Shown: piece by piece, positions 13,730 to 16,074 of the stretch | Layout: the number at the start of each line of letters is the position of its first letter | Position numbering within the stretch: the stretch's first letter is position 1 | Assembly: GCA_051530055.1 (NCBI GenBank) | Contig: CM121341.1 | Coordinates: 3,338,151 to 3,402,150, forward strand | Length of the DNA: 64,000 bases | Origin: Neoechinorhynchus agilis | Taxonomy: Eukaryota > Animalia > Acanthocephala | Direction: 5' to 3' | Made by a program: the position numbers and the translations under genes | The notes under the pieces: model-generated | Told to the model about the DNA's origin: nothing | What the model saw: only the letters and a program-made list of their open reading frames with translations | The model's database searches: none

Positions 13730-16074
13730 TCACTTTAATTTGAATAATTTCTCTTGTTCTTCATAATTTTTTAGATCAGGTAGTTCACTTAATTGACGCT
13801 GAATGAACTCAATGGCTTTTGTACTGATGTCATTTTGATTAAACTCAATATCGGCAATTTCAGGATGGACCGCTGGAGGGCGCTCCAATCCTTTGGCATA
13901 CTGCTTCAAGAATTCCCCAAAGGTCTCAAAATCCGGATACATTTTCGCTAGCAACTTTTGAGCGCTCTGACTCTCTGCTTCAGCTTTATCTGCACCTTTT
14001 GCACTTTCCGCAAATTTGTCATATTTTTTAAGAGCTATAGAAATCGCCTGAGATCTTTTAAATGATTTCTATAGATCTTTAAATGACATGTAACACCACT
14101 ATAATGATTCTCGCAACAGGACTCTACGATTTTTCCGCTAAAATAATCTTGATCTACTTCTTTTTTCAGAATCGCAAATGGAGTCGGGCACTTCATTTCT
14201 AAACAGAGTGCATGGATGTTCGGATCCGTTATACGAAGTGGACCAATGCGCTTTAATGAGGGCTGTAGCCAATCACATTTCTCTTCGTTGCTCACAAACG
14301 CCGCTAATTCGCTGATTTCGTCTTCATTTTCAAGAAACTTGATTCCAAGTTCGTTCAGAGCACTTTTGGCACATTCTATCCTGGCTGATTTTTTACTTTG
14401 TCCGTGACCGTAACCTAATCGTTTTTCTCCAATTTTCGCTTGGTATGCGAATAGTCGTATACTGTCGACTTACTTAAATTAAGATTGACTAAAATCTGTC
14501 TTTAGGAGATATTATTTTTACTTAAGAAAAGGACTTTCGAAACAAGTAATGAGGCGCTTGGGAGGAGCATCTTTTTAACTACTAAATAGGAAACTACGAA
14601 GAAATCGAACGGTCTTATTCAAAACGATTTGTCTGGTTCGATAAAATTAGAGATGACTTGTAATCATATCGTCACATCTCCAACTTTATCATTCCGCAAA
14701 ATTGTCTCCTGATGATTTTGATCGAAAAAAAAGGAATGAAGGTGCCCGCAACGATTAAAATGGTTTTAACCTTTAAAGTAAATCGATCATTGGGGCATTC
14801 TGGAGGATCTGCGGGTTCGTACATTAGCTTCATTTTCAATTTCTGTGAGCAATATTCATAAAGACACACCAAAGGAGGTTTCAATTTCGGTTGTTTCCGG
14901 ATAATCGCAGTCTTCAATGAAGCCGTTTCGGAATTGTTCATCTTTAATTTCTTAGTGAATATAATATGACTCCCATCAGCCGGAACTTCATCACTATCGC
15001 TAGTCTTTTCATGATCCGCTTTCCGTCTATCATCCAAATGTTTCCTCTTATCCGCCAAACGAGCAAAGTATGGGATTTCAAGACGTTCGAACTCAAATCG
15101 TTTCATGCAATACTCACGAAGTTGATCGCTAGTTAAATGGTCTATGACTTCTTCACTTTTGGCATCCGTTCGTTCTCGTTTGATAATTTCATTGTAGAAC
15201 AGTGGTTCTTAACCGAATTTGGGTCGAGGGTTTTGCAACAAAACTAAGTCTAATGGATGATAGCGATTTAAAAAGAATTTCTTATTGAAATGTGAAACTG
15301 TAGACTCATTCAAATGAAATTCGAATAAATAGAATCCACAGTTTCTCAAAGAAAACATTGCAGTTTTTTCCTTTCAATTTCAATTCTTAAAAACTTACAA
15401 GCAATCTGACTGAAGAAGGCCAACGAAAAGGCCGAAAAATTTCAATATAAATCTATTTCTGAGTGAATATCGCTAATTGAAATTGAAACAATAATGATTA
15501 ATTTCTTTACAAGTTATTTCCTTGTATGAAATGGGGTTTTCATCGCTTTTGAATACAAAAATGCTTCATAAATAACCACAGCGACGAATTTGGAAGTCGA
15601 ATAAGGACTTTCTTAACACAAATGTTAAACATGGCTCTCCAACGATCCAGAATTATGGGCGGCTTTGTCGAGATTGATGCTGCTGCGAGTTTAATTAAAT
15701 TAAAAAAAATAATATTGTATGTAATATATATTAAAAAAATTAAACAAGCAACAAATTTGTTTTAAATCATAAAAAATCGGGGTAGTCAAACTTATTTTCA
15801 GATTTGGTTGAGAAACACTGTTGTAGAAGATACATGGAATCGCCGCGACGGGTACTTTGTGTGATCGAGCAGTTACATCGCCTAGGAAGTAAGGACGTGA
15901 GAAAGTGACTACTTGAGTTGCTTTGTGCAGAAACATTGGAATCCCGGAATCGTGAGTCACTTTTATCCATCCTTCCGGGAGGTTTTCGAGTGCCCATAGT
16001 GGTAAATCTTTTATTGTCCATTGTTCTCGGACACGAAGGGGCGCCAATGGAGTTTTGGAGCTTTCGTCGCTCAT
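13730..16074 (-). CDS. DGCR8: Microprocessor subunit DGCR8/Pasha (WW/Rhed domain plus two dsRBDs), multi-exon
   Basis: [34 protein letters not shown]...IPC matches the DGCR8 WW region; dsRBD1 PPLVCLYEYC...GYGHGQSKKSARIECAKSAL; dsRBD2 ITDPNIHALC..TPFAIL; internal exon structure at 14460-14760 only partly resolved. Confidence 0.92.
15200..15820. mobile_element. hAT-superfamily non-autonomous DNA transposon (621 bp) inserted in DGCR8 coding sequence
   Basis: TIRs CAGTGGTTCTTAACCGAATTTG / CAGTGTTTCTCAACCAAATCTG (18/22); perfect 8-bp TSD TTGTAGAA at 15192-15199 and 15821-15828. Confidence 0.93.

Follow-up and report, generated by a model that had tools for sequence, protein, structure and literature searches.

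In SOS splicing, transposons are excised from animal mRNAs independently of the spliceosome, and base pairing between their inverted terminal repeats is both required and enough for this (PMC12779559). The larvacean literature describes non-canonical introns derived from miniature inverted-repeat transposable elements (MITEs) in Fritillaria borealis and its relatives (Henriet et al. 2019, cited in PMC11282704; PMC13326754). Euglena follows a nonconventional intron code, N3-CAG ... CTG-N5-6 followed by a purine R (PMC12501133). Here we describe a locus of the acanthocephalan Neoechinorhynchus agilis that shares traits with each of these systems. It lies in a window (the whole 64-kb stretch of DNA that was analysed) of CM121341.1, assembly GCA_051530055.1, where a 621-bp AT-rich element with the features of a hAT transposon interrupts the minus-strand coding sequence of DGCR8/Pasha four codons past the haem-binding IPC motif. 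We privilege the hypothesis, to which we assign a probability of about 0.6, that this hAT-like insertion in DGCR8 is excised exactly from the RNA by a hairpin-guided process independent of splice dinucleotides.

The element occupies positions 15200-15820, between DGCR8 exons 1 and 2. It starts with CAGTGG and ends in the complement of CAGTGT; its inverted ends (15200-15221 and 15799-15820, each starting CAGTG) match at 18 of 22 terminal bases, and the inverted arms 15192-15221 and 15799-15828 are 30 nt long and 80% complementary. The flanking 8-bp target-site duplication is 100% identical. Its copy nearer the 5' end of the transcript lies at 15821-15828 (TTGTAGAA on the plus strand, TTCTACAA on the coding strand) and the second copy, also TTGTAGAA, at 15192-15199. 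The consensus start of hAT terminal inverted repeats is YARNG, and the duplicated site fits nTnnnnAn, which we take to be the hAT target pattern. The 8-bp duplication, the YARNG-type inverted ends and the small size without a transposase open reading frame (ORF; the longest inside the element are 47-49 aa) are those of a hAT element. When the window was scanned for elements that start with CAG or TAG, match at 9 or more of the 12 terminal bases and have a perfect 8-bp duplication, only this one was returned, and the same architecture occurs 0.05 times on average in locally shuffled windows (any match in 2 of 40 shuffles).

Identification of the host gene comes from a PDB sequence search. The minus-strand ORF starting at 16074 encodes MSDESS...AAIPCIFYN, and this exon 1 piece is homologous to the dimerisation (WW/Rhed) domain of human DGCR8 (PDB 3le4, E=7e-18), the match reaching the haem-ligand IPC motif. 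For the open stretch that runs downwards from 15199, DGCR8 is the match in two structures of the Microprocessor, 6v5b (linker and first double-stranded RNA-binding domain, dsRBD1) and 6lxd. DGCR8/Pasha is characterised by a WW/Rhed domain that contains the IPC cysteine and by two dsRBDs downstream of it. Pfam gave only a sub-threshold WW match on the exon pieces, and a word-index protein search with exon 2 gave no match, its length window having excluded full-length DGCR8 and its collection being without RNA-derived N. agilis fragments. The first-pass annotation of this DNA had claimed a 621-bp element with CAGTG ends and a perfect 8-bp duplication, inserted in DGCR8/Pasha just after the IPC motif; the repeat and inverted-arm analysis bears out the first part of this description and the 3le4 and 6v5b matches the second.

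RNA evidence comes from a 2025 study, four runs of which cover 79-89% of the locus in their Logan contigs. Three RNA-like runs (X2, X3 and X4) were used and compared, over 13500-16300, with the raw whole-genome run X8 of the same species. They are labelled only 'RNA? (a guess)'; we take them as transcriptome because of their ~20 Mb of contigs, a fivefold contrast between exon and intron depth, joints that are absent from DNA, and the published directional mRNA-seq study of N. agilis (PMC12690905). Contigs of all three runs pass directly from 15191 to 15821; exactly 629 nt are left out, and the 8-nt ambiguity of the joint equals the duplication. The segment missing from the mRNA (15192-15820, minus strand, any register up to 15200-15828 being equivalent) is thus the element plus one duplication copy, and its removal restores IPCIFYN/EIIK with no extra residues. 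Contig depth at the joint is 12.6 (X2), 32.4 (X3) and 33.2 (X4), for an exon depth of ~30, which is also the depth of the RNA contigs spanning the exon 1 region (15821-16231). Exon 2 is complete in a single contig of X3 and in one of X4, each with 30 letters of exon 1, and the X3 contig also carries 29 letters of exon 3 at its other side. The assembly words being 31 letters long, 30 letters across the joint require that the junction-spanning reads are real.

Contigs crossing from exon into element are present in each of the three runs as well, so transcription passes through the element. Its depth in the RNA contigs ranges from 0 (15192-15379 in X3 and X4) to 18.6: the part nearer the 5' end of the transcript (15485-15850) is found at 5.6-18.6 in all runs, and the 3' part (15192-15379) is covered only in X2. 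This imbalance may come from an assembly effect at a repeat nested in the element, from premature termination inside it, or from an intermediate of its excision.

Two other segments of the gene are missing from the mRNA. The first (14460-14790, minus strand) is 331 nt long and its joint, 14459 to 14791, is found in X2, X3 and X4 and in 0 DNA reads. It ends in AT..TA or AA..GT, with 1 nt shared at the junction, and an 11-bp stem including one G-U pair forms between its ends, 4-5 nt in from each; an apparent donor AAG/GTTAAA near 14771 is unused. The T-run at 14725 lacks one base in 19 of 21 whole-genome reads and in the RNA contigs, which makes it a homopolymer error of the assembly and the true length of the segment 330 nt, as in most reads. 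The second (14025-14077, minus strand) is 53 nt long, with its joint 14024 to 14078 in X3 and X4 and in 0 DNA reads. It ends in GA..AA, AG..AA or AA..AA and carries a perfect 11-bp hairpin, CTATAGAAATC / GATTTCTATAG. The two segments share just 1 to 3 nt at their two ends, and U12-type ends (AT-AC, or GT-AG with an ATATCC motif) are found in none of the three segments. Candidate cut rules common to all three (fixed dinucleotides, T/A...T/A, A...A, a fixed distance to the stem) were tried and none fits them all.

When the four exons are joined as in the RNA, an ORF of 443 aa results that is colinear with DGCR8 orthologues across both dsRBDs and in the C-terminal tail. All four exons lie on the minus strand. 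Exon 1 (15821-16074, start codon 16074-16072) covers the WW/Rhed domain up to IPCIFYN and its last 8 nt are the upstream duplication copy. Exon 2 (14791-15191; EIIKRE...ADPPECP) is spanned by single RNA contigs and has the 6v5b match. Exon 3 (14078-14459) encodes the end of dsRBD1, the linker and the start of dsRBD2, and exon 4 (13730-14024) runs through the stop codon at 13732-13730, where the recorded gene call also ends (13730). The recorded calls otherwise break DGCR8 into a 124-aa product reading into the element and a 368-aa product starting inside it. If the element were kept in the RNA, the frame would stop at 15700, giving the 124-aa product (P0001).

The joint across the element could be a product of the library or the assembly, through a jump of reverse transcriptase across the hairpin from one 8-nt repeat to the other or through a mis-join. 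Template switching at short direct repeats beside hairpins yields false non-canonical junctions, and the junction falls exactly in the 8-nt repeat at the foot of the stem. However, a retained element should then have the depth of the exons, and it is found at 0-18 against ~30; the 31-nt words with 30 letters beyond the joint demand real spanning reads; and the junction of the 331-nt segment shares just 1 nt. The libraries, moreover, were made from mRNA, and kits of that type fragment RNA before reverse transcription, which would separate ends lying 580 nt apart. An artefact of this type is hardly credible.

Genomic DNA carries the element. In X8, ~14-22 whole-genome reads lie over each boundary and none shows any of the three joints; of the words sampled across the locus, 97% occur in a second DNA data set, X1. 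Single-nucleotide polymorphisms (SNPs) segregate in the DNA sample inside the element (15592 and 15784) and nearby (14588 and 14675), and there is no empty site, so both haplotypes of the X8 sample carry the insertion. A second copy or a retrocopy of the gene is argued against by an exon depth in X8 equal to that of the flanks and by the absence of joined DNA reads. The simple insertional knockout that the first-pass annotation had named as its refutation is contradicted: spliced RNA exists and the DNA reads reveal neither an intact second copy nor an empty allele.

These DNA data bear on two other explanations. In one, the joined RNA derives from worms or alleles free of the insertion and the reference allele is a knockout; the RNA and DNA runs indeed come from different samples, and the X2 contig keeps the 53-nt segment together with private SNPs. 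Yet the whole-genome reads, despite heterozygous SNPs of which two are inside the element, reveal an empty site at none of the three positions, and exon-element boundary contigs place the insertion allele in each RNA run. The depth of the element, far below that of the exons and zero over 15192-15379 in two runs, is unlike that of a stable element-bearing transcript, and it would take three independent insertions in a 2.4-kb gene, each of them fixed in the DNA samples and missing from the expressed alleles. We find such a polymorphism improbable. In the other explanation, a programmed or somatic excision would remove the DNA in the expressing cells, in the manner of ciliates, and whole-worm DNA would be mostly germline. 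Acanthocephalans have few somatic nuclei and their females are full of germline material, and a precise excision of transposase type would also remove the element with one copy of the duplication. But the ~14-22x of whole-genome reads lack the joined form, hAT excision normally leaves footprints, and the 331- and 53-nt segments, which are not bounded by duplications (1 to 3 nt shared), are removed in the same RNA. Excision at the DNA level thus appears very improbable.

The ends of the skipped segment do not conform to known splice sites. Its nine registers read, on the coding strand, CA..AA, AC..CA, AA..AC, CA..TA, AC..CT, TA..TC, CT..TT, TC..GT and TT..TG, and GT-AG, GC-AG or AT-AC ends occur in none of the nine on either strand. 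The first-pass annotation had proposed that the element provides its own in-frame GT-AG sites. Its arithmetic is right: GT at 15818 and AG at 15208 delimit 611 nt and leave CIFYNKPLFYNEII, and an AG..AC intron over 15819-15194 (626 nt) leaves one Asn. Canonical splicing from 15818 to 15208 as the main route, with the six extra residues NKPLFY, has in its favour that the sites exist and that the product is in frame. Against it, no contig of the three runs shows the 611-nt product and all show the 629-nt skip with 15191 joined to 15821, which makes this route most improbable; the 626-nt AG..AC intron is likewise absent from the contigs of the three RNA-like runs. As contigs drop rare variants, either product could still be a minor isoform. 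The mechanism of that annotation is wrong in its specifics and right in spirit.

What the three segments have in common is the pairing of their ends. End duplex energies are well below those of shuffled controls, with z=-5.3 for the 629-nt, -3.2 for the 331-nt and -6.3 for the 53-nt segment. In the element, the stem begins right at the first base and closes at the last, with a duplex energy of -18.4 kcal/mol. Rfam gave no match over 13000-17000 at E up to 1, and the element and the hairpins fit no described RNA family.

A U2 spliceosome relaxed in the manner of Fritillaria, having lost its dependence on GT and AG, could also account for the removal of these segments, the end hairpin being then a mere relic of the transposon. 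The larvacean precedent speaks for it, with introns that are mostly non-GT-AG, many of them MITE-derived, and attributed to a modified U2 spliceosome (PMC11282704, PMC13326754). The N. agilis introns are, like those of Fritillaria, lineage-specific, non-GT-AG, situated in a conserved gene and exactly removed, the transposon-derived one being the element. At 53 nt the shortest segment is as long as a short spliceosomal intron, and it can be read as AG..AA, a register that fits an AG-A(N) pattern; the exactness of the junction is also that of spliceosomal junctions. However, the ends of most Fritillaria introns are AG-AC or AG-AT, and these introns are attributed to a spliceosome with altered U1 and U2AF, whereas the 629-nt segment has no register with an initial AG and its end-pairing is prominent. 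The 331-nt segment is AT..TA or AA..GT, so that AG-AC or AG-AT ends are found in none of the three and only the 53-nt segment allows AG..AA. The 3' end of the 629-nt segment has no polypyrimidine tract followed by AG, the usable GT (15818) and AG (15208) within the inverted ends are ignored, and end-pairing is significant in all three segments. Larvaceans are tunicates, and N. agilis, an acanthocephalan, belongs to Spiralia. We consider a relaxed spliceosome, the strongest of the rival explanations, possible but rather unlikely.

Hairpin-guided excision finds its closest parallel in SOS splicing (C. elegans and human; AKAP17A-CAAP1-RTCB; Nature 2025, PMC12779559), where a transposon with pairing ends in a coding exon is removed without GU-AG at the repeat termini and the gene is rescued. 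The DGCR8 element has these properties, with inverted ends that pair and an excision independent of GU-AG at the repeat termini. SOS insertions are purged over time (PMC12779559), whereas the DGCR8 insertion is present on both sampled haplotypes and the other interruptions of the gene are of the same style.

Protist introns offer further likenesses. As in Euglena, CAG and CTG pair at the ends, the junctions are non-canonical and short direct repeats lie at the boundaries. In register +3 the ends of the 629-nt segment are CAA-CAG ... CTG-TTCTA and take the form N3-CAG...CTG-N5, with spacers that total 8, the length of the hAT duplication. Unlike in Euglena, however, the downstream exon of this register starts with C and not with a purine, and the 331- and 53-nt segments have no CAG/CTG. 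The introner elements of Amoebophrya (PMC7789003) have inverted repeats of 8-20 nt forming a hairpin and short direct repeats over the boundaries, again in a parasite with a reduced genome; in this dinoflagellate the direct repeats are 3-5 nt, against 8 in DGCR8, and the elements form repeated families, against ends that are single-copy at 95% identity or more. In the canonical introners of Micromonas, Aureococcus and further eukaryotes (reviewed in PMC11282704), a transposon with inverted ends and a duplication also becomes an intron and one duplication copy is removed with it, but they carry or create GT and AG for the standard spliceosome. The GT and AG available in the DGCR8 element are unused, and GT-AG or GC-AG ends made up by element and duplication are found in none of its nine registers. 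A literature search returned no paper on such introns in Acanthocephala, Rotifera or Pomphorhynchus laevis.

The sequence of events that we envisage begins with the insertion of a non-autonomous hAT-like transposon into the single DGCR8/Pasha gene, where it now sits on both sampled haplotypes. The pre-mRNA is transcribed through the element, and the inverted ends of the element would pair and set the two duplication copies side by side. The paired structure, rather than splice dinucleotides, would define the cut and the rejoining, so that the element would leave the RNA with exactly one 8-bp duplication copy and the pre-insertion frame would be back. The same route would remove the other two interruptions. 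Because these behave alike, the route would here be one of routine intron removal and not of emergency repair. The insertion, the exact RNA junction, its absence from DNA and the significant pairing of the ends are observed, whereas the role of the hairpin as the signal is what we infer from them. For the acting enzymes, an endonuclease and an RTCB-type ligase are weakly favoured over a relaxed spliceosome.

Several observations weigh against hairpin-guided excision. Published SOS junctions are heterogeneous, imprecise and often out of frame, and the DGCR8 junction assembled in three runs, from contigs that hide rare variants, is identical and exact. The U2 spliceosome is held responsible in Fritillaria, which is the only animal lineage rich in such introns. 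The unpaired spacers add up to 8, 9 or 3 nt, depending on the segment, and no simple helix ruler is evident. The X2 contig retains the 53-nt segment, so its removal is not always complete; this retention could reflect variation between samples in removal or genotype, or more unprocessed RNA or DNA in X2. Finally, contigs give no per-junction read counts, strand or minor isoforms, and RNA and DNA were taken from different worm samples. The X2 contig also has private differences at 13692 (T>C) and 14119 (G>A) and the lowest depth of the joined form.

The history of the element is only in part that of a young transposon tolerated by splicing, as first proposed. A hAT-like insertion tolerated through removal from the transcript stands, but its youth is doubtful, since 4 of the 22 end positions are mismatched, the element contains two segregating SNPs and near-identical copies of the ends are lacking. 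The perfect duplication could be due to constraint, one copy being coding and the other perhaps needed for excision. Membership in a multi-copy MITE family, also proposed, is not supported: at 95% identity or more, the outer ~180-250 bp on each side have the read depth of single-copy DNA, and in the 64-kb window neither blastn nor a search with up to 3 mismatches finds the ends a second time. The only repetitive part is the centre (15379-15512), where part of an unrelated high-copy repeat is nested and the DNA depth is ~440-2000x against a background of ~18x, with loose ends at 15404, 15445 and 15512. Four partial copies of this repeat, in alternating orientation, lie at 32956-33386. Reads also join the repeat in opposite orientation (15407/15469), which suggests a foldback.

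The closest recognisable orthologue of the gene (P0009) is that of Pomphorhynchus laevis (GCA_012934845.2; WNNJ02003839.1, 4001-5704), an intronless and uninterrupted ORF of 567 aa. It is 124 residues longer, mostly in the linker past IPC and inside dsRBD2, and the overall identity is only ~26%, indicating that DGCR8 evolves fast. As the P. laevis orthologue is uninterrupted, all three interruptions are specific to the N. agilis lineage. The 629-nt interruption is an insertion by its own anatomy; no other syndermatan orthologue that could polarise gain versus loss was recognisable among the 150 best representatives. Synteny with P. laevis was considered and rejected, the ThiF-family neighbour being MoeB/UBA4-like there and NAE1 in N. 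agilis.

This NAE1/APPBP1 neighbour (PDB 3gzn, E=6e-21) consists of two long minus-strand ORFs in the same frame, split at 17070-17084 solely by a TAA and a TAG within 15 nt, beside a GTGAGT; the GT...AG stretch near these stops is 23 nt long, which is not a multiple of 3. Just upstream of the 5' end of DGCR8, at 16132-16300, lies another high-copy repeat with a DNA depth of ~285-760x, in which the DGCR8 RNA contigs end. Many opposite-strand joints at 16202-16248 suggest that it is a foldback or palindromic family. Elsewhere in the window, a 131-bp hAT-like element at 55591-55721 has perfect CAGATATTT...AAATATCTG ends (CAG...CTG) and degenerate 8-bp flanks (4 of 8 matching); it belongs to a different family from the DGCR8 element. 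A TFIIIA zinc-finger ORF at 1300-1361 is broken between HEKV and HNGY by 59 nt that start with GTAAAC and have no AG at the end (GT..TT in that register). This segment carries an 8-bp hairpin, CCCAAGAT/ATCTTGGG, and, judged from its letters, appears to resemble the 53-nt DGCR8 segment in style.

The DGCR8 element is an RNA-supported, transposon-derived, hairpin-ended non-GT-AG intron in an essential animal gene, with inverted ends and duplication still intact. It illustrates intron gain by transposon insertion with exact removal that needs no splice dinucleotides; for animals, published cases are limited to larvacean tunicates and, in the form of an imprecise rescue, to C. elegans and human cells. 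With a spiralian lineage as the third, it becomes testable whether the hairpin itself is the splicing signal and which enzymes read it. We advance only tentatively, as a conjecture less probable than its contrary, that N. agilis might have a dedicated spliceosome-independent pathway that recognises hairpins, cuts and ligates, an exact and constitutive descendant of SOS splicing. DNA transposons would then settle for good in the coding sequence of essential genes as the main source of new introns, and all three DGCR8 segments would belong to this class, as gains that postdate the separation from Pomphorhynchus. Gene finders bound to GT-AG break such genes. Estimates of massive core-gene loss in acanthocephalans rest on BUSCO analysis of genomes and may be partly inflated, an inference tempered by gene losses also published from transcriptomes. 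In N. agilis, 15 microRNAs that belong to seven conserved families are expressed (PMC12256650), so a working DGCR8 and Microprocessor are expected. The microRNA pathway of this worm depends on a gene whose DNA appears disrupted but whose mRNA is intact.

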